This document shows, one piece after another, positions 7,802 to 63,498 of a DNA stretch of 64,000 nucleotides. The stretch is taken from contig DF237248.1 in the NCBI GenBank assembly GCA_000708835.1, forward strand, positions 1 to 64,000. The letters run 5' to 3'. The translations under genes and the position numbers were made by a program. The stretch comes from Klebsormidium nitens. Lineage: Eukaryota; Plantae; Klebsormidiophyceae. The stretch's first letter is position 1. Every line of letters starts with the position of its first letter. Below the pieces are notes generated by a model. It ran no database searches, was not told where the DNA came from, and saw only the letters and a program-made list of their open reading frames with translations.

Positions 7802-10800
7802 TCAAGCCTCCGGTGGAGGCGGAATTGCTGACGTCAGCTCGAGCGTGTGGAGCCGCACGGCTCCTAAAAGCACCTCGGGCAGCTCCTCTTCCGTGTCGCC
7901 CTGTCCGAGGAGTCATTGTGCGGTGAGTCAATCGTTTACCTTTCGAGCATTACGAGGATTTTCTTCATTTTCTCCCTGCTGTATTGCGTCTTGTATAGTC
8001 CGTTCACAAGAATCTACCTAGACCACCTTTCTACGAAAGTACTGGTTTTTACTCTTGACGTTACAAGGAGCATCGAATCCCCGGTGATTTGCAGTCACGC
8101 ACGATGGAACGTCTTGACACAACTTGTCCACCAATCGTCTCCAATTGCAAGAAAGGCTTCATTGCTTTCAATTAGGTGAAGAGTTTGTCCTGACAAGTCC
8201 CATTCCTACTCTTACTATCCGCCATCTGGGGGGAAGCAGATAGAAAGGAGGGGTCACCAGGAAAAAGTGAAGACCTTGCCAACGAAAGCGGGAAAACGGA
8301 TGGATTCCCACATTGACGGACTGGGACGAGGACAAGGATACCGTCGGTCAATTCTTACCCTGATCAGGAAGGCCATGTCGACCACTAAGATGGTGACAAC
8401 TGGCAGCACGAGGCTGAGCACGTAGCGCACGATTGCCGACGTCCCCATGTCGACATCGATCTGTAGGAATAAAGAAGGTATTTGCTTTGCCACGATTTCG
8501 CGTGATGATGCGCTTGAAACGTCACAATCATCCAGGATCTTCTGCTGTCCGCGTGATTGTCCCTTCAAGCCGCGTTTTGCACGTCACCCGTCGTTGGCCG
8601 GCAAGGAAAGCGGTGAAATTTGTGAGCGCCCTGTCGCCTCAGGCAAGGAACTCCGATACTGAGCAGAAAGCATCAACAGGCAGTAAAAATTGGTCTACAC
8701 GTGTACTACATATTCGTAGAAAGAGAAGAAATCATTTTGAGGAGAGTGAGAAGCAGCAGATCGAGACGCGGAAACGAGGTCAGTACGCGCAACGCCGAAC
8801 AACGAAGAAAGACTGGCTGCGAGGCACGTACCTCAAAGAAGTGCTCCCCCTTGTCGTATCTGCACTTGAGCACCTGGGCTAGCGGCACCGGCCGCGAGCC
8901 CACGCTCTGGCGGATCAACCACGAGCCCTGCACAGGAAGACAGGCTCAGCAAGGGCAGGCTCAGCAAGGGCAACTCCATTAACTGGTGTGCCCGCCAGAC
9001 GTATGGAATCAGTCCGATACCTCCGCACAAGAGGTCTATAAGCGTACAGTCTAACAAGCTTGACCGCAGTCGAACGGCAAGGGACTCTATTAGTCGGGGC
9101 TATCAAGCAACCGGAACAAGAGCCTTCGGTGCTCTTGCTTCGGTGCTCTTGTTTACCAAGAAGAGTCGACCTCAACCGCAAGATTCGCAACCACAGGAAT
9201 TTGGGTCCTCTTGATTGGATCTTCTTATTCAAAGCGGCCAGCTCGTATTCCAGTTTCCACAAGAAACTTATTCTGAGCGGCAAAGCAGCGTCCGAACAAC
9301 ATGAAATGCGCCACTCACGTTGGGTATGTTGGGCAGCAGCGTGAGGCGCGCGTCCCGGTACGCGTCGTCCCCGTGCATGAAGGCGTGGAAGAGCATGCGG
9401 TCCGTGATGGGCTGGTACGACGCGAAGTAGTACACCATGCTGTAGTGCACGGGCCCCGCTGGGACCTGCGGATACATGACGTAACAAGTGACGTCTGATG
9501 CTGGGCTCAATGATGTTTGAAGAGGTTCAGAATGACTTCCTGAAAGAGATTGTAAACCGCGCAGATACGGCCCTGCTGTCTGTTGGCAAGCGGACAGGGA
9601 TGGCATTCTGAGAGAAGCGGTGAAGGCAGCAAAGGGGCGTCTGGATGTGTCGTAATCAGAAACGTAACAAGCAGGTAAGACGACCGTCGCAGGGTAAAAC
9701 TGCAGCGCTGCAACCCCTGAGGCGCGGGCACCTCTGAGAAGGCCAATTTGCAAAGAAGTTTGTAAGCACAACCAAAGGCCCCTCAGAGAAAGAAACTCCG
9801 AACACAAGACTGAGGGACTGGATAGGAAGAAAAGAGAGGAGAGAAGAATGGCATGCAGACGATATCGACCAGGTAAGCAACTCTTTTCAGCAGCGGAGGC
9901 GTCATGACAGCAATCTTTCCGGCCACTCCTTACCTGCATATTGACGACGAAGACGAACGGCGGCCCCCCTTTGAGCGTCCGGTTGACGAGCCCCCCGGGC
10001 CGCCGTGCCAAGCGGTCCATTCGGACGTCCGACTTGAACCAGTCAACTGCTACAAGTGTGAAAAAGGGCTCCTTCGCGCGCTCCTGCAAGACGATTTTTC
10101 CTTCGCTCAGTCTTCTAGGGGTCGGGTTCCTCCTCCTCCAAAAGCAGACATTCGAGAACGAAAGTGATTCCTCAGATAGCGGCATCAGAAAGACGTCGAA
10201 CATCACTCGGCGGCCATCCAATCAATGATCGGGATTAAGAGGAGAGCAGACGCGACTGCTTTCCCGCAAATGCCGAGCAGCGCCGAGCTGACAGACGTGT
10301 ATTGCACAATTTACTGTTCATGTGGAACACCTGGCCGCCGACCCACTAGGTTACTCGAGGAAGGAAGCAGTTGCCCTCATTAGAAAAGTGACTCGGGGAG
10401 AAGGAGCAGTTGCGTCAACTGAAACGGTTTTCGAGGAGGAGCAGTTGCTCTGATTAAAGGAGTTACTCGGGAAGAAGGAGCAGTTGCCCTGATTCGAAAG
10501 GTCGATCAGGGAGAAGGAGCCAAACAGAAAGGTTACTCGAGGCATAAAAAGCAGTTGTGCTCACCATCCCGCCATCGAAGGGATAGCTCCTCGAGCGCAG
10601 GCTGAACCCCGCTGGGTCCGGCACCGACCAGCAGTCACGGCCGTCCGCCACGTTGGACGCCCGTCGCACAGAGCCCGAAAAGGGGGGTATGGAGGGAGAA
10701 GTCGCAGTGTCTGAATTGGCAAAACGATCGAAGTTCGTAGAAGTCGCTGTATTAAAACTGGCAGCAGAGAAGAATCATGGCGCAGGGGCAGCGGTGTTAG

Positions 10801-20283: not shown

Positions 20284-20867
20284 NNNNNNNNNNNNNNNNN
20301 NNNNNNNNNNNNNNNNNNNNNNNNNNNNNNNNNNNNNNNNNNNNNNNNNNNNNNNNNNNNNNNNNNNNNNNNNNNNNNNNNNNNNNNNNNNNNNNNNNNN
20401 NNNNNNNNNNNNNNNNNNNNNNNNNNNNNNNNNNNNNNNNNNNNNNNNNNNNNNNNNNNNNNNNNNNNNNNNNNNNNNNNNNNNNNNNNNNNNNNNNNNN
20501 NNNNNNNNNNNNNNNNNNNNNNNNNNNNNNNNNNNNNNNNNNNNNNNNNNNNNNNNNNNNNNNNNNNNNNNNNNNNNNNNNNNNNNNNNNNNNNNNNNNN
20601 NNNNNNNNNNNNNNNNNNNNNNNNNNNNNNNNNNNNNNNNNNNNNNNNNNNNNNNNNNNNNNNNNNNNNNNNNNNNNNNNNNNNNNNNNNNNNNNNNNNN
20701 NNNNNNNNNNNNNNNNNNNNNNNNNNNNNNNNNNNNNNNNNNNNNNNNNNNNNNNNNNNNNNNNNNNNNNNNNNNNNNNNNNNNNNNNNNNNNNNNNNNN
20801 NNNNNNNNNNNNNNNNNNNNNNNNNNNNNNNNNNNNNNNNNNNNNNNNNNNNNNNNNNNNNNNNNNN
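20284..20867. other. Assembly gap (584 N)
   Basis: Run of N. Confidence 1.
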
Positions 20868-22203: not shown

Positions 22204-25200
22204 TCACAGGAAAGAGAAGATGCTACTTCTTTCCGGAATGGCAGCTGGGATTGCCTCTGATACACCGCCGACCTTCCGAGGAGCTTCAACCATCAGTGGT
22301 GAAACGTCTTCTTTCCGCCGTTCACCCAAGTGCTCGACGGGTGCGTTGGTGCCGCTTTCACGCTCAGTCAGAACGGCGGGCTCCGTGCTTGAGCCTTTCA
22401 CTGAGTGCGACTTGAACCCCAGAGCTGCAGCCATTTCGCCAATCTCGCCAGCAAAGTCCGATCTGAAAGAATCTGTGAAAGACTCCTTTTCGCGGCTAGA
22501 TCCGGACGCGAGAAACGTCTCGCTTCCGTACGAACGGCCTCCTCCGTTGCCTTCAGAATGAGAGGGCATCCCGGCTCCGTCAGCTAGGGTTACGTTCCGA
22601 CCTTCAGCTAGTCCGCCTCTGCTTCTGGCCCCCGTCAGAGCGGAATCGAAAGTCAACGTCGAGAGCGGCTGACTCTCTTCCGCGATTTTCCTTCTCAGAT
22701 CCGGCATCTTCCAGGTTGGGGCTTTCCTGTGAGCAGCTCCGTTGAGGAAAGATCCCAAAGGCGGTCGAGAAGTTACTGCTCTTCCCGCCTGATTTTCCGG
22801 TCCGCAAAGCTCTTCGTCACAGAAGCTTCTGTCCCCGGTCGAAGCGAGCCTGCTACCCCTGTTTTGAAACTCAAGCTTCCTCGGAGGCGAATCCCAGACG
22901 GCCTTCTCTTCCCGCTCGGGTCCTGGCTCGCAGTTGGCTGTGCGCTTCAAGGGTGCGTTGTTTTGCCGTAGGGAGAACCCAGAAGCAGGAGCTCGGTTCT
23001 TTCCGGAGGATGCCTTTGACATGGACGCGGCAAACGACTGTGCAGCGCTCGGGCCGCTTGGTTCTGCCGCTGCTGAGGAAGTGGATCCACTAGGAGCCCC
23101 TCTGAGGGAAGAGAGGGCCGTCACCTTTGGTTGCGCCGAGCGAGCGGAAAGCGTTGCGTCCGAGTGCGCCGACGGCCGGGAGAAGAGCTTGGCAGTGCTC
23201 GAGAAAGTACGCGTCCGCTCGGGAAGTTGCTCTGAGGAGGGTCCGTCTTGATTCGAGGAGGAGATTCTGCTCCGTTTCGGAGGGAACAGACTGTTCAACG
23301 GTGCTTCTGACATGTTCCGCTTTGCAGGAACGGGCTCCACTGGTGGAACCAGGTTTTCGGTTTTGGCGTGGGAAGAACCTCTGCTGGTCCATAGCGCTGA
23401 AAGAAAATTCTGAGGTCAAATCAGAAAAAAAAGGTTTAGCAATATGCATACGGAACCAAATTTGAATTGAGGCTCTCTTGTAAAACAAGCACTAAGGGCG
23501 GCACGTTCTAGCATAGTTCTTGCCAACATGGCACGTTTTCTCGACAACGACAGTCACAAACACAGAGATCTGGATTGAAAGGAACTCACATCGTTGCCAT
23601 CCGTTCCATTCGCTCTGCGTCCAGTCCAGGTTCCTCTTGCAACATGCATGCTCGCACGCGCTTCTGTCTGCAAAGAGAAAAGGGCGTTCATTTCTGCGGA
23701 AACGCTATCAAGAGGTGCTCCTTAGTCTCAAGGCACATTAGGACCATTTTATCTGGAAGGATTACCGCTTCTGAGGTTTGCAACGGAAGCATACAGATAC
23801 TCTCGGGCACCTCATCACGGAGTCCCTACTTGAGGAACAAAGTTTGACACGCCTGCAATAGTACTTCGAACCATTCTATTGCATCCTCACCTGCACAAGG
23901 GCACCTGCAAGCTTGCTGCTGCAGCGCCTCTCCTCCTGCCCCGGTATCTTGAAGAAGTTTTGCGGATCTGCAACGAAGTTCGAAGATTCATCACATGCGG
24001 CAACATGCATTCAATGGGCAATTCGTAATCAAAAGCAGTGGCAGCTTTTGAAAGGTACTTGGAAGTGCACTTGTCCAGCAAGATTTTTGGCTGAAACGGC
24101 GCAAAGACTGGAGCAATACCTGTGATACTAAACAAGGCAGCTCTGACCGAGGGGACAAGTCTAAGATTGTCATCGAGAACAGCTCACATGCTAGGCTCCA
24201 CTGACGATCCGGCTGGTGGCATTTCCAAGCTTGCGCCGTCCGATCCAGAGCATCGATCCGACTGAATTCTGGTGTTGTAACGAAAAGCCGTGAAATCCTC
24301 AAATGCTTGAGGGCCCATGTGCGGTCTTGGCATCTCCTGCGTTTTCTTAGCTGCTTTTTGGGCCGCTTTTTCACCGTTCTTGGAGGCTTTCTGTGATGCT
24401 GATGACTTTGCTGGTTCATGTGCGATCTCAGACTTTGAGGATCGGTCGTACGTGACTTGTGCGGTTATGTCAAGACCAACTGCAAGAAGGAAAAGAAAAT
24501 TGTTCTGGCTGGTCATGGAACGGCATTGCAATACGGGGAAGTCGTTCCCTTAAATACCGTACACCATGTGCGTTACGAACCGGAGGACAGACGCTTATCG
24601 CAGTCCTGAAGGAGGGTTATCATTGGAGAGCGTGCTGAGCTGTCTTACTACGACATCAGTGGAGTGGCCTTCAGAGCGTCTTGAATGCGTTGTACCGTTT
24701 GCAAAGTCTAGTCGGTTTTAGACCAGGAGCCTGATGCTTACCGTAGTCCTCCAAAATGACTGTGGCGGTGATGTTGGAGGGAGACCCGGAAGCGTTTCTA
24801 TTGGCGACTACGGTGAAGTAGTACGGGCTGCAGAAAAGCGAACAACCAAGATATGGGCATCAAGTGGGGCTTTGAAGCCTGACGACTGTCATCTAAAACT
24901 CGCTTGTCAAACGGAATCCAGGTTTTACTTGAACAGCAGTGCAACCATGTGGGTCACAATTACTGAGACGATTGCAGAGATACAGGTTGAGAGTCCCTAC
25001 CTCGAGAATTGGTCGAGCCTGCAAGGTACAAGGAGATGCAGTTGTTTTACTGCCCTCTAATCGCCACGAATCCACGACGAAGGAACCCCGGTTCATGTTT
25101 TCGGCAAGATTCAGGGATTCACTGCTATGCTCTTGGATTTCGAAGACTTGCTGGGCACTGAAACAAAGTCTCTGTCGATTTGATGCCTCCTGTCATACAA

Positions 25201-28200
25201 ACGCTTTAAATCTTCATACGTCGTAGGTCCGTGAACAAAAAGAAACATACCTTATCTTCTCAAAAGCCAAAAGCCTGTTATCTTGCTCGCTCCCGACCAC
25301 CTGCGAGGAAACTCCAGCTTTTAGGAGTCGTTGAAGGTGAGATCGAAAAGAGTCACTTGGATGAGGCTCTGACGTCAGAAAGTAACGTACGTACTTGCCT
25401 GCGCTTTCGCGGGAAGTCCTTCTTAATCAAGCCTCTATTTCTCCGGCGCTGGGCCCCATGAACCTCGTCTTGTGATTGCAAGGATGATGCGGTCAGGCTA
25501 GCGACTGGCGGATCATTTCAGATACACTTACCAGAGCTGCCGAATGCCACTGCTGGGCCCCCGCCTGGGACGGCGGCGAGATCCTGGTCAGCGTCACGAG
25601 GTACTCGTGTTGCCCGAGGAGATGCCTGTCCGTCTCATGCAGATCCAGGGCGACCCTTGCCGGCAGTTCTTGAAGGGCCTGCTTGAGCTGGTTTCCGAAT
25701 GGGTACTTTCTGCCCGTGATCGTCTCCAGCCTGCGCGGGTCCGCCTTCTCGAGCGCTTCAAAGGTGGAGAAGCCAGCTGCCAAGAGAGCCTGAAGAGGGG
25801 ATTGCGAACAGAAGGATTGGAAAGCCCTCCTTCTAAAAAGGCATGGTATATTCCGTGAGACCTTTGCAGATTGTAACCCGCTGCATGTACGTAGGTTTTA
25901 TGCTAGTAGGCCATGAAATTTTATATGTGGACACTCATGTCCGTGTCGTTTCGTCAAAATCAGAATCTTACCCTTTGTGTCATCGTCCCAACTCCGTGAA
26001 GCTGCTTCAGCAAGTTGGTGCTGTCTTCCCACATCCTTTGACGGAGACACTTTGCCAACGTCAGAGCCGCGACAGTCTCCTTGTAGCGTTTCTTAGAGGC
26101 GAAGTATTCACTCATACACCGTGCAATACGGGAGCCGTTCGAGCAGATTCCGGAAACGTCCTGCGGAAATGGAATGAAGAACCAACATAAACCAGCTGAA
26201 AACTGGCTCTCTCCAAGCATGGTGCGTCAGAATCCCAGAAAATGGCTAAAGAAACCAGGGTATGAAGTTACTGGTGTGAGAGTATTCAATGGAGGCAGCG
26301 TAATCAATCTCACGACGTGTTGCATACACTGTACTTACTTGGGTAAGCGTGAAGTCAAGTTGTGAAGGCTCTGCAGAGAGGGCATCGTTTGCAAGGACGA
26401 AGATCTTTTCTGGGTCCGTTTGAATCCTCTTTTTGGGCTTTCCGTTCGGACCCTCGACATGAAAACGGATCCGGCCAGAAGAGTCGTTGTTCATGTCGTT
26501 GAGCCTTTTCTTTTCGTCTCGCCTCAGCTTTATCCCTGCGGCAGGAGAAGAGAGTCATCGGGGCACTACAGCAGCGAGTGAGCTCCGACGAAAGGGTGAC
26601 TATTTCTTCTGCACCTCAAAGTAGGCCGTCGCAGTCTGCGGATAACATCCTCGATGCAGCGCATCAATGGTTATAAACAGAATTCATATCACGCTCTCGT
26701 TACTTACAAGAGAGCTCCTCAGCGCTTGAAAGGATCGACAGAAGCTCTCGCAGGTCGCCCGCTTCTTCGGTCTGCGTGATGAGCTTCATGGTTGTGAAGC
26801 TCAAGTAGAACCTTGCCATGAGTCTCCCAGGTTCTGAAGAATGACAAGAAGAGATGCATGAGGATTTAGAAATCGTTGAAATCTCTGGTTTCAGACGGAC
26901 TTGTGGCGAGGTGATACAAGGCGTTGAAATAAAAATTTGTGGGTCCTGTTCGAAAACATGGCTTGTAAAACTTTGATGAGCTCACCGAGCGGCTGTAGGA
27001 CGAAGCCATCGTCGTCCATCTCAATGAGACCGTACTTTGCAAGCTCGTGGACGTTCTCAACGCAAATTCCTGCAAATAAAATGCAAGATTCCGAGAGCCG
27101 TCAGAAGGACACGTCAGTAAGCCCTGGACCCTTTTGTCTGTAAGTAAAGTCTACAAAGCTCCTGAAAGACGCCTATTTCTGTAAGTATTTGAGAGGAACA
27201 AAAGGATGGAGAAGTGCCTCAAAACGACGCGCAATGCCTCAGCCAAGCCCTATTTTCTTAGCAGGCTTTCCTTTGAGGAAGCGGAGATCGCAGTGTTTTT
27301 GTTGAGACGCTTACCTTTCAGCTTCTCTTCCAGCTGATACTCGTTCACGTTGGCCTCGATCCCGTAATGCTTGGGATTCTGTACCGATGCCCAAACCACG
27401 TTTAAACATCGAACTTGGAAACGGGCCAAAGTACACTACGTTTGTGGTTACCATCATTTTTACATTCTCAGTCATTGAAGAAAGTAACAATCTGAATGGA
27501 AAAAGGATCTGCTTACCTTCTTGACACGCACGTATAGGTATGAGTTCTTCAGCCAGTCTATTGCCAGGCTGATGTCTGTCACAGTAAGCAGCACAACTTC
27601 TGCATTGAGGTGTTCCACGAGGCAATGAAGCAGCCTGCAGCAGAACCAAAATGCGCCAATTGCATACCATCAGATCACTTTGCTTCAGACGATGCGTCCC
27701 ATGATTGGGCGTTGAGTCTTCACACACTGAATTTAGTCGTTCTACATTCACCGTCTAGTGGAAACGTGACGTCCCTTTATTCAACCGGATTAAGTCATGT
27801 ACAGTGCTATTTCACCTGGATACTGTTCTGTTGCATCTTGTGCGCTTTGAATCTTTCAACCGTTGGCCGCAAAAGATGACGGCTTACTCTGACTCGACCG
27901 GTTGGGACCCTGTCAAAAGATTCTGGTACATGTGCACCTGCAGCAAAAGTTACAACACTCAAGTTCAAGCACTAGTATTCGCGAGATTCATGCCGCATCG
28001 AAACTTCTCAAACTTCCCCCACGCTGTCCTTGTCGGTGCTTTCAGACGAATGCACTTAATCCGCAGCAGATGTAGTCTCTCACCGTCTCATTCCTCGTCA
28101 TGATGACAACCGTGCCCGTATCGTCATACTGAGGCCGACCTGCTCTGCCAGCCATCTGCAAAATTACAGGTTTGTTTTGAGCGCCGCTTCTTTGATTTCT

Positions 28201-31200
28201 GGACAACCGTGTCAAGAAAGCTTTCAGAAATGCTTCGTCTCCGAAATATAAAAGCTGCTCTCGAATCTGTCGACAACTTCAACCATACCAGAAAACTGTG
28301 CTGGATACCTGAAGTATTGTTGACCGGTCGTACTCGACGTATCCACCTTTATCCTTGGCACTGCAGACCCAAAGTAGTGGATTCAACGTGACTGCGTGAT
28401 TTAATCATGAGATTCGAAGCGAATCAAGGAGCTTGCAGCTTAGAATTGCTTTGTGAGTCTTTACGAGAACTACGACAGTTACAAACTGAGCTTGGGTGGA
28501 TTGGGCTCGTACCGCATGCCTCAGCAGGTTGAGAGAAGCATCCGTGCATCTGAGGTCACTCCTGCCTATCACGTTCTCAAACAACCGGAATCTCTCGGCT
28601 TTGAAAACTCTTACTAGAATTGGGTCGATTTGATGACGACGAGGTGGGCAGGAAGGTTTACTCCATGGGCAAGCGTGCCGGTCGCGCAGACAACTTGCAG
28701 ATCGGCTCTCTTGAAGAGTCCTTCAATTGCAAGTAAACCAGAAGATTCAGGATTGAGGAGGAAGCATGTCAATGACAGCAGGGCTCCAATTTGTGCTGCC
28801 ACAAATGAATGACCAACAAGAGTCGCATGAGGGGACTCGAATAAGATAGTACGAAAGATCGTCAAAAGAACTAGGAAAAGCATCATCGAAGTAGAGTACC
28901 TTCGACGAGGGCGCGATCTTTCGCATCGAGCGCCGCGCTGTGGTATGCAACTGAACGAAACCACGAAAATCTTTTGTTATGAGTGACTCAAACAAGGCTA
29001 AAAGAGAACAGGCAGTAGCAGAGAGGATATTAGTGTCCTTATAGTAGGTGAGGACGCAGCACATGAATCAAATTCAACGATGTCGTGATGCACACGACCA
29101 TGCATAATCCTGATACTCACTTCCGTGCTTGATGCATGATTGGAGAATCTTGTCTTGAACCGTCAAGGCAGCTCTTTGAAGTCTTTCGTATTGCTCTTGA
29201 GACTTGATGAAGGGGTTGCTCCACCCCGGCTTATTGGTGTGCGCCACGAGAGCCAGTGCTGCGTCGGATGTTCCTTTTCTGGTGCTGCAAAAGACGAGCG
29301 TCGGACGCCCACCGCTGTGCTGCATGATGATATCTGAAAAAGACAAAAGAAGACCACGTACAAAGATTAGAGTCTGGTGAAGCGGAACGAATATTTCTCT
29401 TGTTTGTCTGCGATGAACAAAAAGCTAGAAGATCACATGCTTTAGGAGCTTTGCACGAGGAATGCATGGAAAGCGGAACTCACCGTTCAGGTAGCTCAGA
29501 AGTTTCTGCAAGGAAACAGATTATATATCAGATGATTCTGTATGAGGGTACAGCTTGTCAGCAACATACTGGCCATTCGTTATCTGCAGGCTTTGTAAAG
29601 ACTGCAGGGTTGCAGCAGACCTTTTTGGACAACGAGCACATGACCACCGTTGGCAGAGAATCATTCTGTCGTACGAAAAGACCGGTACAGAAGAGCGCTT
29701 ACCTTCTCGAAGAGGAAGTCGTTTCTAGCCGCCGGATAGCCTGCACAGAGCGAAGGACGTTGAATAAAAGCTGGATTTTGGGTACATTTCAGAGGAAGAC
29801 CTAGCAGGACAGAAGGAGCTTTGATCTATCCTATAAGATTTAGGTGGTCCCGCGAAACAGGCTCTACTCGAGACGATCGGCTTGTCTTACCATAGACCTT
29901 GGTGGTAAGTTGCACAGGTCTCACTTCCTCGCCGAATCTGTGATGGAGCAAGCAAACTCAAAGCCGTCAGGGACTGTTTAACCGAGGGGTAGAATCAGCG
30001 CAAAATCGTTTGGTTCGGCTGAAAATAAGGAAAGACGAGTTGTACGAAAGAGGTCCCAACCAAAGTGGTGAAAATCAAGTCGAACTTACACTTTTACACC
30101 TTGGACCGGACATCGAAGCCATTCTGCGATGTCTCTGATGTTGGGGATCGTGGCGCTGACGGCCATCAAACGGATCTTTGCAATAGGAAGGGACGTCATC
30201 TCGGGATACCTTGCAGACAAGAAAAAAACCGCTCATGGAAATCTTCGACCCAACACTGTCATGGAACGCAATCAATCAAGGCACGGGCGCAATTGCAGTC
30301 TGTTTTTGCCTTGATTGTCATAGAACATGGCTTCAGTGAAGTTGCATTCCACCTGCATGCATACAGGATTATTACTTACCTGGCTAGCATCTTCAATCGG
30401 CTGACAATGGCCTCCAATGCGGCACCTCTTGACTCATTTAGCAAGTGAACCTCGTCGATAAGGACAAGGGCAATGTCCCCGAAAAATGACATGCCTCCTG
30501 AATCATTTCTCTTTCTCGTCAAGGAGTCAAACTTCTCAGGCGTCGTGAGGATTATGTCAGCATCTTGAAGCTCCTTCAGTTGCGCGATATCGCTGTCACC
30601 TGCAAGGCGTTGGCGTGTCAATCTTCACTGTCAGTAAAAGCAGATGTCATTTCGTCAAAGACTTCTCCGTTCTTGAAGCAAATGCCTTGTAGGGACCAGA
30701 TGCTTTCTGAGAATTACTCCCATCCAAATTATTTACTCACCTGTAAGCTCTCGACAGCATAGACCCAATCGACCTCCAAACTTCTCCTCCCATTCTGCCA
30801 GCTTCTCTTGGACTAGTGCCTGAAAAGGCAGATAATGGATCACCGTGGGTGACTCCTTTTACCGCATCTGACCGGAGAATCTGCCAGATTAAGGTAGTTG
30901 TCGCAAGACAGACAGTTTGATTCAAGCACTCGTTGAGGCCCCGCCTTTTTCCGTGACCGTTCCCCCGAGCTTCACAAACAGATGCAACAGATTCCGATCG
31001 ACACGTAGACTCACCTTCATTGGGGCAATGTAAACCTGCAGTTCAAGACATTTTCTCCGGTCAGTCAAAGAGAGGACATAATTTCTTCAAGAGGAAAACG
31101 TTATGGCCTGAGCCAATTCTGTCGGATTCCAAATTTTGCTATGTTTACGTATTGAAGGCACTGCCCCAGTCTTAGGTTACAGTACTGAAATTTCTTGCGC

Positions 31201-31846
31201 ATCCAAATATCTGCAAACAGGGTACTGTACGAAACCCAACTACAATGCATCTCACCGTTTTCAGCAGACCAGGCTGGTGAACAAATGCTCCGTCTCGATC
31301 GAGGAAGCGTGTCAGTAGGCGCAGGATCGCCAATTCAAAGAGGACAGTCTTTCCGCATCCAGTCGGAGCTGCTCGCAAAACAACGAAAGACAGTGAGGAC
31401 CACTTTTACTATGGTACAACCGAATGGTACCTGTTTTTGCTCCTGCTCACGGATGGATAAAGTCTGATAATATCGATTACTTTCAGGAGGAATGAAGATC
31501 GGATCAAACCCCTGAGACTCACCTGCAACGACTAGATTGTGGTCCGATTCATACGCTTCCCTGAACGTGTCACTCTGGACCGAGTTGAAGTACCTGGCAG
31601 GACACGCAGCCCCACGATGAGTTCTCTGCTTTTCGTGGGGCTGTTGTAAATACGGTGCAAGCATCTCAATCCAACTTGTTTTGAAGACAGGTGACCTTGG
31701 GTAATTCTGTGATTTAGCCATAAATTCCTACGCCGGAAGAATGCGCATTTGACGGAACACGTGCTCACTGAAACTTGCCTGAAATCGAAAACGTTCTGGA
31801 AGCAGAACGGTAAGGCGGTCACCGCTTTCAAGGCATAGGACTCCAT
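22204..31846 (-). CDS. MER3: MER3/HFM1 (RCK) DExH meiotic crossover helicase with Sec63 region and long Ser-rich C-terminal tail, about 25 exons
   Basis: MESYALKAVTALP...FR|YFNSVQS; Walker A APTGCGKT; VYIAPMK|ALVQEK; IILTTPEKFD; LIDEVHLL; AVSATIPN; LVFCSTRKG; TLAHGVNLPAHLVVIKST; Q|MAGRAGRPQYD; HLNAEV; CSNGSRIARCMSEYF; ITGRKYPFGN; terminal SIFSFL*. Collinear with plant MER3. Confidence 0.96.
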
Positions 31847-33367
31847 CTGGACTGCACACAGAGGTCAACGTAGTTGATTTCCGACCCGCCAGGTTTGCTG
31901 GTACAATTAGCTGCTCAAGAAAACCTTGACGATGATGAGGTCAGACTGCCGAGTCTTCGTTTCGAGAGGCCCTCAAGTAGTCGACTCCATGAACGATTGG
32001 TGACACAGTACGATTTGATGCACGCGCTCTTGAAATCTTAAAAGGCTCCGTGGCCTTTTGATTATGAGCCTCTTAAAGAACAATTATCTCATGCAACGAC
32101 CTCGCAGCACGCTTTCCTTGGATCACTTGTGTCTCACTGTCCTAAATTGTGTTGAAGTCGGCTTCAAATGTATCAAGAAACTTCACAGTTCCTTTGAGAT
32201 GTGTCAGTAATCACCCCATGGTTCAATACGTACCTGAGTTGAAACGCAAATTGCATCATTTTTGACCTTCCGAAGGAACAACTCGTTTCGATCTGGACTA
32301 AGAGCTCACCTCACTTTTGCTTCCTCCTTCCGAAAGCAATTTTGGTGATCAGGGGGATTCGGAGAGGAAGCCCTTCTGATCAGAAGCAGTCTTTCAGTCT
32401 TTGCATAGATATAAGATGGACCTGAAAGACCCGTCAAGGTCTTCTTAGTCCCCACGCCCCCCTCTTGACGCAAATTTTGTGCCCACGTTTTCAAGTGCTC
32501 ATATTGCAGATTGCTTGAAAGACTATGCGCATGCTCTGCCCTCTAGCTGACATACTGCTGCACCCCTGCTCCTCCTTGAGCATCTTAGTCGGATCATTGT
32601 GGACATGAGCTTCCTTCATATGGAGGTAAGACCTAGCGCCGAACTGCTACCCTGTTTCACACTTTTACCAGGGCGGCCGGCCGCTGGACGTTTGGCGCAC
32701 CCAGCCGCCCGCGGGTCGCCCGTAGAGTTCTGACGCGGCCGCGTACGGGCCGGCGGGCGGCCGTCAAGGCCGGGCGTCAATCGCGCGCGCATTGCGCGAT
32801 CTTGTATACCCCTACAGCGCGCGCACACAGGGTACATACGGTACGCACGTACCGTCCATTGCAGGGCTCAGGGTTTAGAAGAACGATGCTCCGATCGAGA
32901 GCTGACTGAGTCAAGTCACTAGCTGCGCGACGTGACGGTTGGCGGCGCAGGCCGCGGGCGCGCATCGCGCGCGGCCCCATCAACATGAGCCGCCTGCAAA
33001 TTGTCTGGTCAGGACTGGTCAAGACGGGGCGCCTTTTTTATCAAAACATATCCAAGATCGACCTAGGTGCCTTCTTCAGGCAACTTGGCAACCAAAGTCT
33101 TTGCTTCAGATTCTACCTCTTGAGCGGAGAGCCGAAACGTGTTGAATGTTGCAGGAATGTTGCATCTTCTCGTGGAGAAGCAGATCGGACTACCTCTGTT
33201 TGTCGCCCTAGACGCAGAGTAGTGGGTGAAGTTGGTGTCCCGGGTTTTATTAGCCGATGATGTACGGTGCGGCACAGCGAAGCAGCAGGTTCTGCGAAAG
33301 ACCCAGGCGTGCTTAAGTAATAAGGAACCAGCATTTGATGCACAAATCTAGGCTCGTGTTTTGAGCC
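31847..33367. promoter_or_regulatory. Putative shared bidirectional promoter of MER3 and MSH4
   Basis: 1521 bp between divergent ATGs; no recognisable gene inside; inferred from geometry only. Confidence 0.6.
32668..32980. repeat. CpG-dense, hairpin-rich element (possible MITE-like or dispersed repeat)
   Basis: About 50 CpG in 310 bp by hand count. Inverted repeats ATCGCGC/GCGCGAT, ACGGTAC/GTACCGT, GCGCGC-ATC-GCGCGC. Related fragment at 61-192. No clear TIR or TSD found. Confidence 0.55.
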
Positions 33368-36300
33368 ATGGCAGAAGTGTCGTCTGCGGATGACACGCAA
33401 TTCGTTGTGGCCCTTATAGAGAATCGAGCGAAGGTAACCACTTCCCTTTTTGCTTTTTGAAGTGGAATTGTAGGCTACGTTGTGCGCTGCTTGGAGGAAG
33501 CTGTGGTATGCAGATATAGCTTCCTGTGTCAGGTCTGAAATTGTTGACTGTCGAGGAGTGTAAGACCATCTGATGTGTAGCTCAAGGTTTTTCTCCTTAA
33601 CGAAGCATTAGAACGGCTTTTGCTAGCAGCTTATCCATCCATAGAGCACCGCTGCCCACGAACGGCTTCAAAAATATTTCAGAAACACTTGGCAACAATC
33701 AAGGCTTGCCAACTCTTTTCCGTGCAGGAAGTTGGCATGGCTGCATTTGATCTAAGAACGGCTTCCTTACACCTCTCACAGTACATAGAGTCATCCAGGT
33801 CATACCAGAACACCTTGACCTTGCTTCAATACTTCGACCCAACAGAACTGATCACGTGTGCAAGCAACACTGACGGCATCGCGTCCCTGATCGAGCATTC
33901 TAGCCTTACGAGCGCACGGAAGTTAAGAAGCCCCACTCTTCAACAGCGATCTGAATCCTGTTCGACAATAAACCTCGCAATTGCAACAGACTAGGCCTGC
34001 TGAATTTTGGTTGTAAGCACAATGATTCTTCATGAATTGACTTGAAGAGAGATGCGGCTTTTAACTACAGACGAATGTGCAGTAAGATCTGCGAAAGCGG
34101 TGAATCCTGAAGCATCCCGTCTTTTTGTTGACAGACAGCTGTACAAAGGGGGTGTTTTGACGACACAAAGGTAAGCTCTGTTGTGAACTCCTTGCGCTGA
34201 TGTCACATGTCCGTTGCAGCAAGAAATAATGACCTCCTCATACTTCAGACCTCTTAGATTAGCTTTCAGTTTATGACGAAGCTGACTCTTCGATCCTGTT
34301 CAGGGTGCTCTTCTCGTGCGGAGTTTTGCTGTCACGACAGACTCCACCAATACAAATCTGGACTCGTATTACAAGCAGTATTATCTGGCCCTCGGAGCTG
34401 CTTCCGCTGCTCTGAAATGGTAAGCGTCCCAGATTACCTGACGTCGATGCTTATCTGTCTTTCAAAACATTGGTGTTTAGAATACCATCTGGTCGGTCAG
34501 CTGCTGGATCTTCAAAGATGGATTCTGTAACGCTAAAATAGGCTGAAGGCGATATCTACGTTTCTGAATGGCGAGCTGGTCTGCTTGCCTTGCAGGGTTG
34601 AGTGCGAGAAGGGTATCCTCATCACTAGCCACTCTCTGAAGGTAAACTTACTCAACCTCAAACTTCAATCGGGTGTCGCATTTCCAAGAACCTCTTTGGA
34701 AAAGGCCAAATATTTCTACATTTTACTATGCTTTTCGGTCAATCTTGACCAACTTGCATGACACATGTTGCAACCGTGCGCTACCGCTCCAAAGGATAGA
34801 GACTTACACAAGGATACTCGCTTTGCAGGTCACATACAATGGTAGCTACGACCACATGAATATCGACTCAACAAGGTGATTGGCCAGATCTGGACCTCAG
34901 CGGCTACGATTCCAGGATCTCATTCCGTTAGTGCGTATACTGAAATATCTGGCAACTTCATATGCTTCTGGGACATTCGACCTGCTCCTTGTCTCGATTA
35001 GTAACCACCTTACACACATGCACTTGCACTTGAACACATACTGCTTGAAATTTCCGCTTCAGAGCTTCCTGTCGCTGTCTTCCGTTCGCAGTGTCCAGAA
35101 TCTTGAAATCATAGCGCCTCTGTGGTGTTCTCCGAGTACGTCCTCCGCCAAGGCAAAGAAGGGAAGTCTCTTTGGCATCTTGAATAACACAAAGACAGTT
35201 TGCGGGTAAGTCCTTTTAAAAGAATCCGTACATCTTGATGGTACAAATCTCATACCTCTCTGCAACTGAATTTTTGACAGATTGGTTTGTTCAGGACTTG
35301 CGTTGAGCCGCTTCTCGACCTTATTATGCGTGAGAAACCAACAAAATTAAACTTCGATGCAGGAGTCGACTGCTGAAAGCAAATCTGCTTCAGCCACTGA
35401 AGGACATCGAGACCATAAACACGAGACTTGACTGTCTGGTAAGCATCCTCTAATGAGCAAGTTGACTATCAATCACCTTTTCAATGATTTAAAATTCCAA
35501 CAGCATTTCGTCGCACCAACCCGCAACACTTGTGCTTGCTAGTCACTTACTACAAACTTTAGCGGGCCCCACTATATTCGAAGAGCCATTCGATTTTCGC
35601 AAAACTACATGGCTGTGCAGGACAACCTCGTGGACGATGAGAACCTCTTCTTCAGTATCCAGCAAGTAATGTCTAAAGTACCAAAAGACATAGGTAAGAA
35701 CGAGAATCTGGACGGGTCTCCTTCTTGCGGAAGGAGATGAGAGGATAACATGGTATCTTTTCCGGCATCCCGCATCCTTGGCTTAGTATCAACCGCCTTA
35801 AACACTGCAATCTTTATCATAGATTGACTTCGTGGCTATCATATTGAGCCGCTAAGTGCAATCCTTTCGTGGTGTCACATCTTTTAGCCGTCGACGGGCG
35901 TGATCCAAAGCTCATGCCGTTGCGTTGCGACTCGGATACCTTCGTTCTTCCTGCAGATCGCGTCTTTTCGCAGTTTGCCTATAAACTGAAAAAGTCGATG
36001 AACATGGAAAGCAGTGGAGCCACCACGATGCGACGCAATCAGCAACTGGTCGCTGGAATCATCCTTCTCAAGGAGGCTCTTGCGTTGATACCAAGCCTCG
36101 CCGAGGTAAGAGCAGAGAAACTTGAAATTGCAGGCGCTGACCGCGTATATTTGTCGTGTTCGAAACTCCTCGTCTGATTCAAGCATTTATTTGGAGACTT
36201 CGAAAGTGCTTTGCTAGTAGTGGCCATGTTACTGAGCTCACTTACTTTCGTCTGAATTTTATCAAATTTTGAGAGGTGAATTCTGCGGCCGCCTCTGTGA

Positions 36301-39300
36301 TGAGTTTCAGCCCCCTGGCTCCATGTGCAGGTTCTCTCTCAGGCGAGCTGCTCACTTCTCGAGAACATCAGGGACTCTGTTTGCCTCCATCCGAAAGTGA
36401 AGGAGCTTCAAGATAGGTGAGGCTTCCTCATCCTAACACGATCCACAAATGACGACAGAGGAAACTTTCTGACTTGATTCGAACGGACGGATGCAGAACC
36501 ATTAGAGTGCTTTGAAGCCCTGAGCTCACAACCGGTAGAAATAATCGCTTCCTTTCCTACCCGTTCAAGGTCATTTAATTCGGTCAGCTTCAGAACTGGT
36601 AGTAAGAATTGCTTTCTTTCCTACCCGATCAAGGTCATTTACTTCGGTCATTCCATTTTGTTCCGCAGTATCGACGACATCATCGATGAGGATGTCTTGC
36701 ACTCCCGCCAAGCTTTCGTGGCCCGCACGCAGCAGTGCTTTGCGGTGAAAGCGGGTTTGGACGGCTTTTTGGACGTAGCGAGAAAGGCTTTCTGTGAAAC
36801 CACTGAAGGTAAGAGGCATGCAGACTCAATGTAAACTCAAGCCCCCAGGACTCGCTGCATTTCGAACGAGATCCGCGGGTCTCATCGGAAGGAACGTAAT
36901 CTCCTGGCCTTTCGCATCTGAGAATCTTGCCAGAATCCACTAATTTCAAGATAAGCTTGATTTTCTGGGAAATAAAGACTCCGTTGGCGTTTGTCTCGCA
37001 GATATGCACGAGCTGGCAAAGCGATACCGAGAGGAGTATGATCTCCCGAACTTGAAGCTGCCGTACAACGGGAAACAGGGCTTCTACATCAGTATCCCTG
37101 CGAAGGACGTGGAGACCGAGCCTTTGCCAAGGATCTTCATTCAGGTGACTAAAGATACAGCTTGCAACGTCGTCCAGTACAGCGCGTTCTTGTTCCGGGC
37201 ATGCCCGCAATCCCGTGTAATAATATGTCGAGAGTCACTTCGGAGTCCAACCCAGATTCTGAAGCAGATGTAGATGACTCCTTCCGCAGCTAGTCCAGAT
37301 ATGAAGAGTAAGCCAATTTCTTTCATCTTCTTTATTGCAGGTTACGAAGCACGGGAAGAACATCTTCTGCTCCACGCAGGAGCTTGTAGCTGTGAGGATT
37401 TCTCATCACCCTTTCAAGTTTCCAGATCCATCGAAAGCCTAGCATGGTAAAAGCCTTCTGATTTGAGTCCCTTGGAGGAGGCGTCTTCTGTCAGTCTAAA
37501 CTGGTTCTTTTCTTCATCTTGAGCCTTTGATGCTGCTCCTTTCGTGGCTCCTTACTCCATCAAATTGGTATTCTCGTACCATCTTCAAGTTTCTGGAAAG
37601 TCACGAATGTGATCTGAACATCTTGCTTCTATTGTTTCATGTCGCAGTTGAACGTTCGAAACAAAGAAGCTGCTGCCGACTGCTATTCGAGAACGGAGAG
37701 GGCTCTTGAAGGTATACTCGTGACTCCAGTCAGACGACAATAATCGTGTTTCTGAAATACGGTCTCGAACACTGTTCTTGTCGCTCGTCCTCACAGTCCA
37801 TTCGTCTTCTAGGTCGGTAGACATATGCAATCATCCATTGCAGATGCTTAGCATTCCCGGCACAACCCAAAAACTCCTGATCGATCCGGGGATTTTCGTT
37901 CTCTTGCAGGGCTGTGCCAGACCATCCGTGAGAACATCCAGTTGCTCATGCTCCTCTCGGAGTCTGTGGCTATGCTGGACATGCTGGTCAACTCCTTCGC
38001 GCACATCGTCTCGACGAGCGCGCCGGAGACCTACCACCGACCAGAGTTCACAGGTACTCAAAGATCTTCAGATGCACGGGTAAAATCTGGCCTGAGCTTC
38101 GAGTCAGGTCGCAACACTTCAAAACACTCTGCTCTTGTTGCTGGAGCCGGACGTCTGGTAAAGGATTGTATTGATCAAAATTGAAAGTCGCGTTCCTTTG
38201 TGCAGAGGATGGGCCCATCGCTATCGATGCCGGCCGCCATCCGATCGTCGAGGGCCTACATTCTGACACGCCTTTTGTTGTAAGGGGCCTTTACATCAGC
38301 TGATCCTTGCGATCCTTCATTGGATCTTCAATTGAATTTGCTTGGGATCTGTGTCCGCAGAAGCAAACCGTCTTCGCTCGGTATCACATAGAGTCTAGAG
38401 ATCAAACACCGCAGAAAAGAAAGGCATTAGACCTCATCCACCTTATCAAGTGTTATTGATCCGAGATTTTGTTTTAGCCTTTTACTTCGAACCTTGTTCG
38501 AACAAGACCGATCGATCTTAGTATATATTCTCTCATTTTTCCCGCTTCTATTGTTTCCAGGCAAACAGCACCTTTCTCTCGGAGGCTTCTAACATGATGA
38601 TCGTAACAGGGCCCAACATGTAAGCCCAGCTTTTTCGTAGTTTCTCAGAAACCCGGTTTGACGATTGAGATGGGTTAGCTCCTCCGTTTGGGTATCAGAA
38701 ACTGTCAGAAACTGCAAAAGCAGAGCCGCTCCTGGGTGTTCTCGGAGTGAATATGGAGCAGAAGGTGGAAGCAGAGATTTAGATAAACTTCATGAAGCAT
38801 TACTGCTTTTTCCACAGGAGCGGCAAGAGCACTTACCTCAAGCAGGTCAGCCTGATCGCGGTCATGGCACATGTTGGCTGCTACGTTCCCGCGCGATACG
38901 CGTCTTTCCGTGTGGTAGACAAGCTGTTTACCAGGATTGGCGCTGGAGACAATCTGGAGAGCAACTCGAGCACCGTAAGCTTCATCGACCCGTCAAGCCT
39001 CGGTAACTTACTGACTCTCAATCTGCAGACTGAAAGTATCACGAATGCCTTTGAGCGGGATCAGAGCAACACTGCTAATTCGAAGGCCGTTCAGAAACTC
39101 TCTTCACAAATCGTGGAGGGAATGTCCAGTCCGAATTCTTCGACGAGATGGCCATACAGTTCACCCTCAAGAAATGCGAACTGCCAATCTGCACTCGTCT
39201 TCTCGCCTGCTCATGTAACTTTCTGCGATGGCCTTCCTCCTGCAGTTTATGACTGAGATGCGCGAGACGGCCTTTCTCATGCAGAACATGACTTCCAGGT

Positions 39301-40587
39301 GGGATCACCAACCACCCGATGAGACCTGAAAGAAAGCTTGCTTTGTTTTTCTGCCTTCATACGCACGACTTCCTTAACCTAGATGTTCTTCCTTTTATGT
39401 GATTCTGACCCGCTACCGCTGGGAAGCGTGGGTGAAGGTATATCCAACGATCCTTTGCTCGCGTCAGAGCCTCTCTTCCTATGTGCATTCAAGGTCCTGC
39501 ACATCTTGTAAGTTCTGCGCTCTAAGCTTTTCTTCTCACCTCCGGCTCAGACATAGCCGTTTTTTGTTGCAGGAGCCTCATCGTGATAGACGAGCTGGGG
39601 AGGGCTACGTCCAGCACCGACGGTCTTGCAATAGCGTGGGCATGTAGCGAGGCGTTGCTAGCAACAAAGGGGTGAGGAAAGAAGCACCTTCGCAGCGCTT
39701 TCAAAGATGTCGCTTCTCATGTACTCTCCTAATGAGGCAGCACATTCCTGTCCCCTACGTTGTCCAGCGACACTTCTTTTCACCGTCTTCTTCCCTCGGT
39801 CTGCTATACCAATCAGGAGACAAGCTCGGACAAGCCATTGCTGGAGAGAGGTCTCATGAAAAGATCAATATCTTAGCCAAGCGCACCCGTTTGCCAGCCT
39901 GCTGCTGTCGAGATTTGCAGGTACGTTGTCTTCGCTACCCACATGTCGCGCCTGGCCGAGCTCTCGAGCATCTACCCGAACGTGAAGGTGTGCTTCCTTT
40001 CCGTCGCGGTCGACAACAACCGGCTCGACTTCCAGTACAACCTCCGGGAAGGCTACACGGACGTGCCGCACTACGGGGTGCTTCTGGCGGAAGTTGCGGG
40101 CATGCCGTCGGAGGTCATTCAGGACGCGAGAAGGATCGCGCAGAAGCTCGATGACCAGGTGAGAAGCAGCGGACTCCCTGGTTTTGCGTTCGATTTATCG
40201 ACTGAAGCGTCGAACTTGGTCTGCTTTCTGATTAACTTTAGCACGAAGCTTGAAACCATTTTCCGAGATTTCCGTCTCTTGTCTTCCCAGCCGAGAAACG
40301 CGTCATCGGGATGGTCGTTGAAGGCCGTGCATTTCTCTGCATAAGTATTTGGACTTGTTCTGTTGACTAATTGTCTGCAGCCATGATGCGCTGAACATCA
40401 AGGTTTGCATTGGATGCAGGAAACAAAACGGCTTGATTCCGGGTATTCCGCTTACCTCAATCTCCGGAAGGACTACTACGTTGCGCAGCGGCTGCTTTGC
40501 TTGCGTTACGCAAACTTAGAGGAAGAGTCGATGAGGGAGTACTTGCAGAATCTCAAGGACCAGTATCTCGATGGGCAGATTGGATGA
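33368..40587 (+). CDS. MSH4: MSH4, meiosis-specific MutS-gamma subunit, about 24 exons
   Basis: MAEV...[11 protein letters not shown]|[21 protein letters not shown]; RGCFDDTK; [10 protein letters not shown]; [13 protein letters not shown]; [24 protein letters not shown]; [14 protein letters not shown]; IDAGRHPI; Walker A GPNM|SGKSTY; DNLESNSST|FMTEM; Walker B DELGRATS; FATH; [12 protein letters not shown]; AQRLLCLRY...*. Diagnostic of plant MSH4. Confidence 0.97.
36543..36650. repeat. Intronic duplication of a 44-bp unit (64-bp period) just upstream of an MSH4 acceptor
   Basis: 36543-36586 versus 36607-36650, 4 mismatches. Confidence 0.85.
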
Positions 40588-41796: not shown

Positions 41797-53446
<11,650 letters not shown>

Positions 53447-63200: not shown

Positions 63201-63498
63201 CACTGCCCAAATCCACCACCTTGTTCTGCGGCTCCTCCAATCTCCGCGGTTCTCCCTTACTCGCCCCATGCGTCCGGCAGTCAAACGCCAGAGCCACAAA
63301 CCCCTCATCAGCGAGCCTGGTTGCGTACTGAACCGGTGCCTGTTCTTTGACATAACAGAAGGGCCCCAGGATCGCAACAGCTGGCGCTTTGCTGACGTCA
63401 CCCCCCTGAGGAAGGTACAGATTGCCCACCAGTTCCACGCCCTCGCTCTGGAAGGTCACGGGCTCGACGGTGTAGCGGCCGTGCCGCGGGGGCGCCAT
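60229..63498 (-). CDS. Alpha/beta hydrolase (COG1073/YcjY-like, dienelactone-hydrolase-type Cys nucleophile), 4 exons
   Basis: VTFQSEGVELVGNLYLP; VKEQAPVQYATRLADEGFVALAFD...HGASKGEPR; nucleophile elbow GVCEGA (62703-62717); PTIMIHGEFSD; VNHFQFYE. Confidence 0.9.
60905..61372 (-). repeat. Degenerate echoes of an exon end and donor site in a hydrolase intron
   Basis: True junction GGCGCTCATGAGCTACGTCAG|GTCAGCGCTC at about 61335-61372; echoes at about 60912-60945, 61036-61072 and 61225-61245; TATGTCGAGACGTTTCAGAG occurs twice (about 61174 and 61286). Confidence 0.7.
62315..62525 (-). repeat. Intronic copy of a hydrolase exon 3' end and donor
   Basis: CACCTCCCCAGTCGCCT(GG/CA)TACTTCTCCAGG at about 62484-62514 (real exon end) and about 62318-62348. 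Confidence 0.8.
62817..62902. repeat. 2 x 43-bp tandem duplication in intron
   Basis: GCCGCCGCAAGCCCCGC(G/A)TTTCAGAGTTGAGATTCCTAGGATT twice, 1 mismatch. Confidence 0.95.

Follow-up and report, generated by a model that had tools for sequence, protein, structure and literature searches.

The closest described systems are the land-plant genes for MER3 and MSH4, together with the bidirectional gene pairs of mammals. Arabidopsis MER3/RCK (AT3G27730; yeast Mer3, human HFM1) combines one DExH helicase cassette with a winged-helix domain and a Sec63 unit in a protein of about 1130 amino acids, whereas Brr2 and ASCC3/Slh1 carry two helicase cassettes. Land-plant MSH4 (Arabidopsis AT4G17380) has about 792 amino acids, with MutS domains II-V, no domain I, and the Walker A sequence GPNMSGKST. 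Mammalian head-to-head gene pairs are reportedly enriched for DNA-repair genes, and a bidirectional promoter is usually defined by start sites that are less than 1 kb apart. In Arabidopsis, the MER3 and MSH4 genes are located on chromosomes 3 and 4, respectively (PMC9957857).

In the streptophyte alga Klebsormidium nitens, MSH4 adjoins MER3. The window examined here is the whole stretch of 64,000 nucleotides that forms positions 1-64000 of scaffold DF237248.1, such that record and window coordinates are the same. MER3 on the minus strand and MSH4 on the plus strand lie head-to-head and are divergently transcribed, with 1521 bp separating the ATG codons at 31846 and 33368 (Table 1). Both genes are genuine and intact, and both are under purifying selection. 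Like bidirectional gene pairs, the two are divergent, are related through DNA metabolism, and have a CpG-rich segment in a short spacer. Unlike such pairs, their start codons are separated by the full 1521 bp, and the arrangement is conserved in the nearest relatives only.

A preceding sequence-only reading had assigned the same gene identities, head-to-head orientation and coordinates, all of which agree with our sequence reading and ortholog matches. Its outer ends are also right: the MER3 stop codon finishes at 22204 and that of MSH4 at 40587. It had likewise placed the Arabidopsis genes on the correct two chromosomes. It had further described the interval between the two ATG codons as holding nothing recognisable. 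Indeed, the spacer yielded no Rfam family, no tRNA and no Pfam match on its eight ORFs, and its sequence is not repeated elsewhere in the window. The author of that reading knew of no description of the arrangement, and our search of the literature likewise found no account of MER3 and MSH4 in a head-to-head configuration.

Table 1. Coordinates of the features of the MER3-MSH4 locus, numbered as in the window.
Feature	Position	Strand	Remarks
MER3/HFM1 ortholog	22204..31846	-	about 27-29 coding exons, about 1450-1490 aa
MER3 exon 1 with start codon	31761..31846	-	read directly from sequence
MER3 exon with helicase motif II (DEVH)	30380..30622	-	Pfam DEAD, E=6e-10
MER3 exon, helix-hairpin-helix part of Sec63 unit (ADPRRLETITGRKYPFGN)	25526..25789	-	Pfam HHH_5, weak
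MER3 terminal exon, low-complexity tail	22204..23409	-	about 400 codons, stop-free for 403
Spacer between both ATGs, presumed home of both promoters	31847..33367		1521 bp
GC- and CpG-rich island in spacer	32647..33046		GC 0.58-0.69, CpG observed/expected 1.1-1.4 (100-bp steps)
MSH4 ortholog	33368..40587	+	23 exons, about 792-797 aa
MSH4 exons 1-6	33368-33433, 33728-33921, about 34149-34170, 34304-34419, 34596-34641, 34829-34875	+	
MSH4 exons 7-12	35092-35205, 35363-35438, 35621-35693, 35957-36105, 36331-36416, 36669-36808	+	
MSH4 exons 13-18	37002-37144, 37341-37391, 37648-37711, 37910-38053, 38206-38279, 38561-38619	+	
MSH4 exons 19-23	38818-38974, 39246-39298, 39573-39671, 39921-40158, 40420-40587	+	
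MSH4 exon with Walker A ATPase motif (GPNMSGKSTYL)	38818..38974	+	Pfam MutS_V, E=5e-21

The distance between the two genes (1.5 kb) is about equal to the next gap in the window, which separates the MSH4 stop from the malic-enzyme gene by 1.2 kb. A search of the window for further meiotic genes found none besides MER3 and MSH4. The recognisable neighbours in the window are an EDR2_C-domain gene, the malic enzyme and a hydrolase-like ORF.

The nearest relatives retain the pairing. Contigs from two sequencing runs of other organisms, called X5 and X6, together tile the interval that begins in MER3 exon 1 and reaches MSH4 exon 1-2, with an identity of about 80-93%. Those of run X6 cover positions 31787-33046 and 32269-33397, and those of run X5 cover 31510-32136, 32157-32872 and 33123-34151. 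Further out, the arrangement disappears. A more divergent Klebsormidium-like relative, represented by loci L008, L009 and L041 from two independent metagenome assemblies, has neither MSH4 nor any similarity to the window in the 20.7 kb upstream of its MER3 start. MSH4 was also not found upstream of MER3 at loci L007, L039 and L040, and at L040 the head-to-head partner of MER3 is an ARM-repeat gene. In L008 and L007, none of the ORFs on the upstream side of MER3 matched a Pfam family.

The same result is obtained when the search starts from MSH4. No MER3 was found near MSH4 in Myrmecia bisecta, where the neighbours of MSH4 include PP2C and Cas1_AcylT, or in Chara braunii, where no gene is annotated within 10 kb of MSH4. 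Among 28 metagenomic MSH4 loci, several of which have 5-10 kb of upstream flank, none carries a piece of MER3. In one close relative (L002, SRR23617307; dS 0.55) the contig begins at MSH4 exon 2 and the upstream side falls outside it, and the contig of the protist-like P0074 begins right at this gene. Among the lineages checked, the pairing therefore occurs only in K. nitens and the relatives nearest to it, which is not the distribution of a conserved functional cluster. Given that it is missing from every more distant relative checked, the pairing looks like a young, local accident of gene order rather than a conserved regulatory module.

The juxtaposition of MER3 and MSH4 is real but confined to K. 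nitens and the closest relatives, and we consider it fairly probable that it is a neutral product of rearrangement, of no demonstrated selective or regulatory significance. A rearrangement most likely brought the 5' ends of the two genes together, and parsimony over the outgroups would make the adjacency a derived state. Each gene would probably be driven by its own proximal promoter, located at its own end of the spacer, and the adjacency itself would be neutral. Any co-expression would come from a shared trans-acting meiotic programme, as it does for unlinked ZMM genes in other organisms.

Comparison of the spacer among near relatives is consistent with this arrangement of promoters. The spacer ends adjoining each gene can be aligned, and the middle, which has diverged or has been replaced, is the least conserved part. 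In run X6, positions 32746-32860 correspond to a segment of the same length but diverged sequence, and 33046-33159 are swapped for 26 letters. In run X5, the contigs end in unrelated sequence around 32873-33122. The GC-rich island likewise varies strongly among relatives. Because the middle of the spacer is its least conserved part, two separate proximal promoters fit better than one central shared element.

The main alternative was proposed by the sequence-only reading, which moved from the improbability of a chance adjacency to a co-regulated meiotic gene pair under one bidirectional promoter. In its full form, this account holds that the spacer is one bidirectional region controlling a module that selection has kept in the K. 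nitens clade. The head-to-head orientation, with 1521 bp between the ATG codons and nothing else encoded there, is what such a module would present, as is the GC- and CpG-rich island. However, no other part of the spacer varies as much among relatives as this GC-rich centre, and the ATG-to-ATG distance exceeds the usual 1-kb limit for start sites, although UTRs are not included in the 1521-bp figure. Similarly, near relatives keep the arrangement at about 90% identity, but at a non-coding divergence of about 10% such persistence would be expected even if selection played no part, and no lineage beyond these relatives conserves it.

The K. nitens genome has 16,215 genes (PMC4052687). If their order were random, one named pair would be adjacent with a probability of about 1.2e-4. 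Ten ZMM genes form 45 pairs, and the probability that any of these is adjacent is about 0.006, and that any is head-to-head about 0.0014, all for a pair that was picked after the fact from a scan in which very many windows and pathways were covered. A ZMM adjacency within this one genome is thus nominally unlikely, and this nominal chance of about 0.006 counts in favour of a module. Divergent neighbours are often transcriptionally coupled, and by analogy some transcriptional coupling of MER3 and MSH4 is plausible.

In 16 RNA-like runs carrying the same species label, about 0.00 of 840 sampled words were present, and MER3 and MSH4 were both undetected. This is compatible with joint silencing of a module but uninformative about coupling, as two meiosis genes would both be expected to be missing from vegetative RNA whatever their positions in the genome. 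The step from an unlikely adjacency to a shared bidirectional promoter is unsupported. That reading had named absence of the adjacency in relatives as grounds for giving up its proposal; this is what we observe in every lineage tested beyond the nearest Klebsormidium relatives, whereas the nearest relatives retain the pairing. On balance, we regard a selected, co-regulated module as a possible but doubtful account of the locus.

A related proposal is that MER3 and MSH4 are a recently formed regulatory unit of the K. nitens clade, in which control elements in the 1.5-kb spacer came to be shared after the rearrangement. We consider this unlikely.

The preferred reading, a neutral juxtaposition of two ZMM genes, presupposes that both genes are correctly named. 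It is highly improbable that the helicase is instead a fragment of the Brr2/ASCC3 type, or that MSH5 or a mismatch-repair paralog has been taken for MSH4. Such a misassignment could be read from the structure comparisons, in which the DEVH exon finds its best PDB matches in SLH1, ASCC3 and Brr2 cassettes, and the ATPase exon in MutS, MSH3, MSH6 and MSH2. However, no chain named MER3, HFM1, MSH4 or MSH5 occurs among the PDB matches of the exon pieces, so the best matches are paralogs and this comparison cannot discriminate orthology.

The predicted MER3 protein has the architecture of a single-cassette DExH helicase with winged-helix and Sec63 units, followed by a long and poorly conserved C-terminal tail. 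Its exon model is approximate and was built on conservation with relatives, not on RNA. The helicase core can be read in exon pieces that include AAPTGCGKT (Walker A), LIDEVHLL (motif II) and QMAGRAGRPQYD (motif VI, QMxGRAGR). Pfam matches on these pieces are to DEAD, SNRNP200_wHTH, Sec63 and HHH_5, and only one set of them occurs between 31846 and 25500 before the low-complexity tail begins. A single cassette between start and stop argues against a protein of the Brr2/ASCC3 type. The larger tail makes the protein longer than Arabidopsis MER3 (about 1450-1490 versus about 1130 amino acids).

Both ends of the protein also correspond to those of Arabidopsis MER3. The ATG at 31844-31846 on the minus strand opens an exon reading MESYALKAVTALPFCFQNVFDFR, and exon 1 probably ends at a donor of the GC-AG type, GCAAGT, which directly follows ...FDFR near 31778. 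The start falls at the same codon in two relatives, L005/L008 (blastn 31849-31775) and L007 (tblastx 31846-31772). The N-terminus (M..LK.V..LP..F...F.FRYFNS.QS) resembles the Arabidopsis sequence printed in PMC9957857, and the helicase motifs correspond as well. The tail ends in SSIFSFL followed by the stop, which is identical to the C-terminus in L005, and Arabidopsis MER3 ends in ...KSIFSFL (PMC9957857). The plant-type C-terminal end, SIFSFL, is therefore present in K. nitens MER3 and is another point against misidentification.

Database names agree with this assignment. When exon fragments were used as queries, all eight named fragment matches were 'ATP-dependent DNA helicase HFM1/MER3', with no other name among them. 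Two of the eight came from a word search with the helix-hairpin-helix exon and six from the search with the DEVH exon. An ESM Atlas search with an 82-aa helicase exon returned generic DEAD-box clusters only. Over residues 1-1000, comparison with L005 gives dN 0.165, dS 1.62 and dN/dS 0.10. Judged by its sequence, the helicase gene is a MER3/HFM1 ortholog, with a predicted role in meiotic class I crossovers.

The MSH4 model rests on a spliced alignment guided by three proteins, those of Cryptomeria (P0156) and Selaginella (P0004) and the public K. nitens model (P0154). The last of these is GenBank GAQ86597.1, annotated as 'putative MutS homolog 4', and matches most window exons at 100%. The 23-exon model is free of internal stops, although the exon 2/3 boundary is uncertain, and its ATG at 33368-33370 matches the start of the Selaginella and Cryptomeria proteins. 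Pfam identifies MutS_II (weak), MutS_IV and MutS_V on the exon pieces; P0154 and its relatives match MutS_III, IV and V. About 25 residues separate the start codon from the beginning of domain II, and the mismatch-binding MutS domain I is absent, which speaks against a mismatch-repair paralog.

The best 120 matches of P0154 show 53-65% identity over 92-99% of its length, and most of the named ones are called MSH4; land-plant MSH4 shares 53-59% identity over 92-99% of this public model. A representative search with one MSH4 exon returned no more than 416 proteins, headed by MSH4 from plants and algae. In length, domain content and Walker A motif the K. nitens protein resembles land-plant MSH4 and is otherwise unremarkable. 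Against L002, dN is 0.018, dS is 0.55 and dN/dS is 0.032. These matches identify the predicted protein as an MSH4 ortholog (MutS-gamma subunit), rather than MSH5 or MSH2/3/6.

It is scarcely credible that the two genes were brought together only by the assembly, through two scaffolds wrongly joined at the spacer, an outcome that the sequence-only reading had named as fatal to its proposal. The 2014 assembly is based on short reads (PMC4052687) and an N gap lies at 20284-20867 in the window, but the spacer and its surroundings contain no Ns. In four DNA runs that carry the label of this organism, two of which are flagged as perhaps being the source sample, Logan contigs contain 0.71-0.99 of the words of the stretch. 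In addition, near-relative contigs of about 90% DNA identity (runs X5 and X6) tile across the spacer and cross from MER3 exon 1 into it and from it into MSH4 exon 1.

The analysis also bears on the public annotation. The public helicase model has 1003 amino acids with DEAD/ResIII/Sec63 matches and a CDS start at 32259, and the public MSH4 model has 677 amino acids and a CDS start at 34052, missing five real 5' exons and beginning with a spurious one. Homology favours the ATG codons at 31846 and 33368 over these starts; the 5' ends of both public models are incorrect and can now be amended.

For the biology of the alga, the young head-to-head arrangement should not be taken as a conserved module. 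If the pair does prove to be co-regulated, it would offer a compact handle on the Klebsormidium meiotic programme, with one 1.5-kb fragment reporting on two ZMM genes. If the two genes have recently become a regulatory unit, the locus would be a natural example, in a streptophyte alga, of pathway genes becoming co-regulated via gene order. To our knowledge, no sexual cycle has been described for Klebsormidium. That K. nitens has kept full-length copies of both genes under strong purifying selection speaks for their ongoing use in meiosis or recombination.

MER3 and MSH4 are both present and are arranged head-to-head, as the sequence-only reading had it. The MER3 start codon (ATG 31846, minus strand) opens MESYALKAVTALPFCFQNVFDFR and is kept in two relatives, and the N-terminus is similar to that of Arabidopsis MER3 as printed in PMC9957857. 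The MSH4 start codon (ATG 33368, plus strand) opens 22 residues that are followed by a GTAACC donor, with exon 2 beginning at 33728, and this N-terminus aligns from residue 1 with the MSH4 proteins of Selaginella and Cryptomeria. The 1521 bp between the two ATGs had been described as holding nothing recognisable. Our searches of this spacer agree, revealing no Rfam family at the gathering score, no tRNA, no Pfam match among its 8 ORFs, and no second copy within the 64-kb window. The spacer does include a GC/CpG-rich island with GCGCGC-type palindromes, which is its most variable part among close relatives, where it is diverged, deleted or replaced.

Features of the MER3-MSH4 region and its neighbours (DF237248.1; numbering is the same in the window)
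Feature	Position	Strand	Basis or remark
EDR2_C-domain gene	9271-10221	-	
Assembly gap	20284-20867		584 N
MER3	22204-31846	-	conservation with two relatives
Spacer between start codons	31847-33367		1521 bp
GC/CpG-rich island, 400 bp	32647-33046		within spacer; base composition
MSH4	33368-40587	+	spliced alignment
MSH4 exons absent from public model	33368-33433, 33728-33921, about 34149-34170, 34596-34641, 34829-34875	+	spliced alignment
Public MSH4 gene model (P0154)	34052-40587		
Spurious first exon of public MSH4 model	34052-34081	+	spliced alignment
NAD(P)-malic enzyme	41797-50587	-	
Hydrolase-like ORF	63076-63609	-	

The spliced models of both genes were searched against databases exon by exon. 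MER3 exon pieces give one Pfam match each to the DEAD, SNRNP200-type winged helix, Sec63 and HHH_5 domains, and word searches with two pieces returned only fragments, every named one being 'ATP-dependent DNA helicase HFM1/MER3'. The terminal exon runs for 403 codons without a stop and ends in SSIFSFL, a C-terminus shared by one relative, and Arabidopsis MER3 ends in KSIFSFL. This helicase domain set, the named fragments and the SIFSFL end bear out the identity first proposed. Solved-structure matches of a MER3 exon piece include no chain named MER3 or HFM1 and hence do not discriminate.

Conservation with two relatives yields a MER3 model of about 27-29 exons and about 1450-1490 aa, with several boundaries approximate. 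In the public MER3-like model the protein is 1003 aa long (DEAD/ResIII/Sec63) and its CDS begins at 32259. Homology instead places the start at 31846 and suggests the longer protein, with a terminal exon of roughly 400 codons. For intron 1, GC-AG splicing is probable, with a putative GCAAGT donor at about 31778 directly after ...FDFR, and a GT-only model runs on into the intron. The only N gap in the window lies about 1.3 kb past the MER3 stop.

For MSH4, the public protein GAQ86597.1 (P0154, 'putative MutS homolog 4') is a 100% match to most window exons. Exon pieces match Pfam MutS_II, MutS_IV and MutS_V, and the piece at 39877-40341 is 96% identical to a 78-aa fragment in a representative protein library, whose 90% cluster includes GAQ86597.1. 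The best 120 relatives of P0154 share 53-65% identity at 92-99% coverage, and most of the named ones are MSH4; the top match among these 120 is an unnamed Mesotaenium (Mesen1) protein. The MutS domains and named relatives thus uphold this assignment as well. A purpose-written protein-guided spliced alignment exactly reproduced the public 19-exon model with P0154 as guide, and gave 23 exons and about 792-797 aa with the Cryptomeria or Selaginella guide. The public model (677 aa) is therefore truncated N-terminally, lacking exons 1-3, 5 and 6. The sole uncertain junction is exon 2/3, where a GTTAAG donor at 33922 is followed by a weak acceptor before 34149 or another before 34135.

An assembly mis-join between the two genes is very unlikely, because contigs from sequencing runs of two near relatives tile the region from MER3 exon 1 to MSH4 exon 1 (X6: 31787-33046, running from MER3 exon 1 into the spacer, and 32269-33397, running on from the spacer into MSH4 exon 1; X5: 31510-32136, 32157-32872 and 33123-34151). 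Four DNA runs labelled K. nitens contain 0.71-0.99 of the window words, two possibly being the source sample and hence not independent, and related sequence is present in runs of four other organisms. The near relatives share the arrangement at roughly 80-93% identity in non-coding DNA. Their least alignable part is mid-spacer (32746-32860 diverged, 33046-33159 replaced), and their contigs run into unrelated sequence and end around 32873-33122.

The pairing, kept in these near relatives, is absent in every more distant lineage examined. A Klebsormidium-like relative (JGI metagenome), recovered from two samples as independent assemblies (L005/L008/L041 and L006/L009), carries an intact MER3 with no MSH4 in 20.7 kb upstream (tblastn, four MSH4 proteins), and nowhere is this flank similar to the window. 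No MSH4 occurs in 3.6 kb upstream of MER3 at a further locus (L007), or in the upstream flank of about 9.4 kb at two others (L039, L040). At L040 (6248-7978 and about 9380 onward), which comes from another organism (Logan run SRR33208241), the gene lying head-to-head with MER3 is of the ARM-repeat/PUB-like kind; the divergent partners of MER3 therefore differ between lineages. A metagenome scan by alignment of conserved MSH4 exon 2 recovered 28 MSH4 loci, which represent several lineages of plants and algae. Upstream flank of 5-10 kb is present at several of these loci, and all 28 are without any of nine MER3 exon pieces. Myrmecia bisecta MSH4 has unrelated neighbours. In Chara braunii, no gene is annotated for 10 kb to the left or right of MSH4, which is one uninterrupted 824-codon ORF (BFEA01000087.1; L010 10001-12475), in contrast to the 23 exons of Klebsormidium, and is possibly a retrogene-like copy. 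In Arabidopsis the genes are indeed on separate chromosomes, 3 and 4 (AT3G27730 and AT4G17380), whereas they adjoin in K. nitens. The pairing is limited to one lineage, and parsimony makes the adjacency a derived state of the K. nitens clade.

Chance adjacency had been judged unlikely. With 16,215 genes (PMC4052687) in random order, one named pair is adjacent with a probability of about 1.2e-4, and for the 45 possible pairs of ten ZMM genes the probability that at least one is adjacent is about 0.006, and that at least one is head-to-head about 0.0014. These values are nominally small, but the pair was singled out post hoc from very many windows, pathways and genomes, and a chance event predicts just such non-conservation. 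A spacing of 1.5 kb is unremarkable, the next gap, between the stop codon of MSH4 and the malic-enzyme gene, being about 1.2 kb. No further meiotic gene was seen among the recognisable genes of the 64-kb window. The literature searched in full text, with incomplete coverage, nowhere describes MER3 or HFM1 as a neighbour of MSH4, in line with the earlier statement though not proof of novelty, and the word meiosis is absent from the K. nitens genome paper (PMC4052687).

A putative bidirectional promoter for the two genes is plausible, and conservation is not in its favour. Sixteen RNA-like runs labelled K. nitens contain about 0.00 of 840 sampled words of 29000-37000. In the cultures sampled, both genes thus seem to be silent or expressed at a very low level, which is expected of meiosis genes and is uninformative on a shared promoter.

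We know of no described sexual cycle in the genus Klebsormidium. Both reading frames are intact. MSH4 is 96.5% identical in amino acids to that of the relative in L002 (dN 0.018, dS 0.55, ratio 0.032), and MER3 residues 1-1000 compared with the relative in L005 give dN 0.165, dS 1.62 and a ratio of 0.10, with a faster evolving tail (ratio 0.39). Such strong purifying selection on MER3 and MSH4 (0.10 and 0.03) argues for ongoing meiotic or recombination use.
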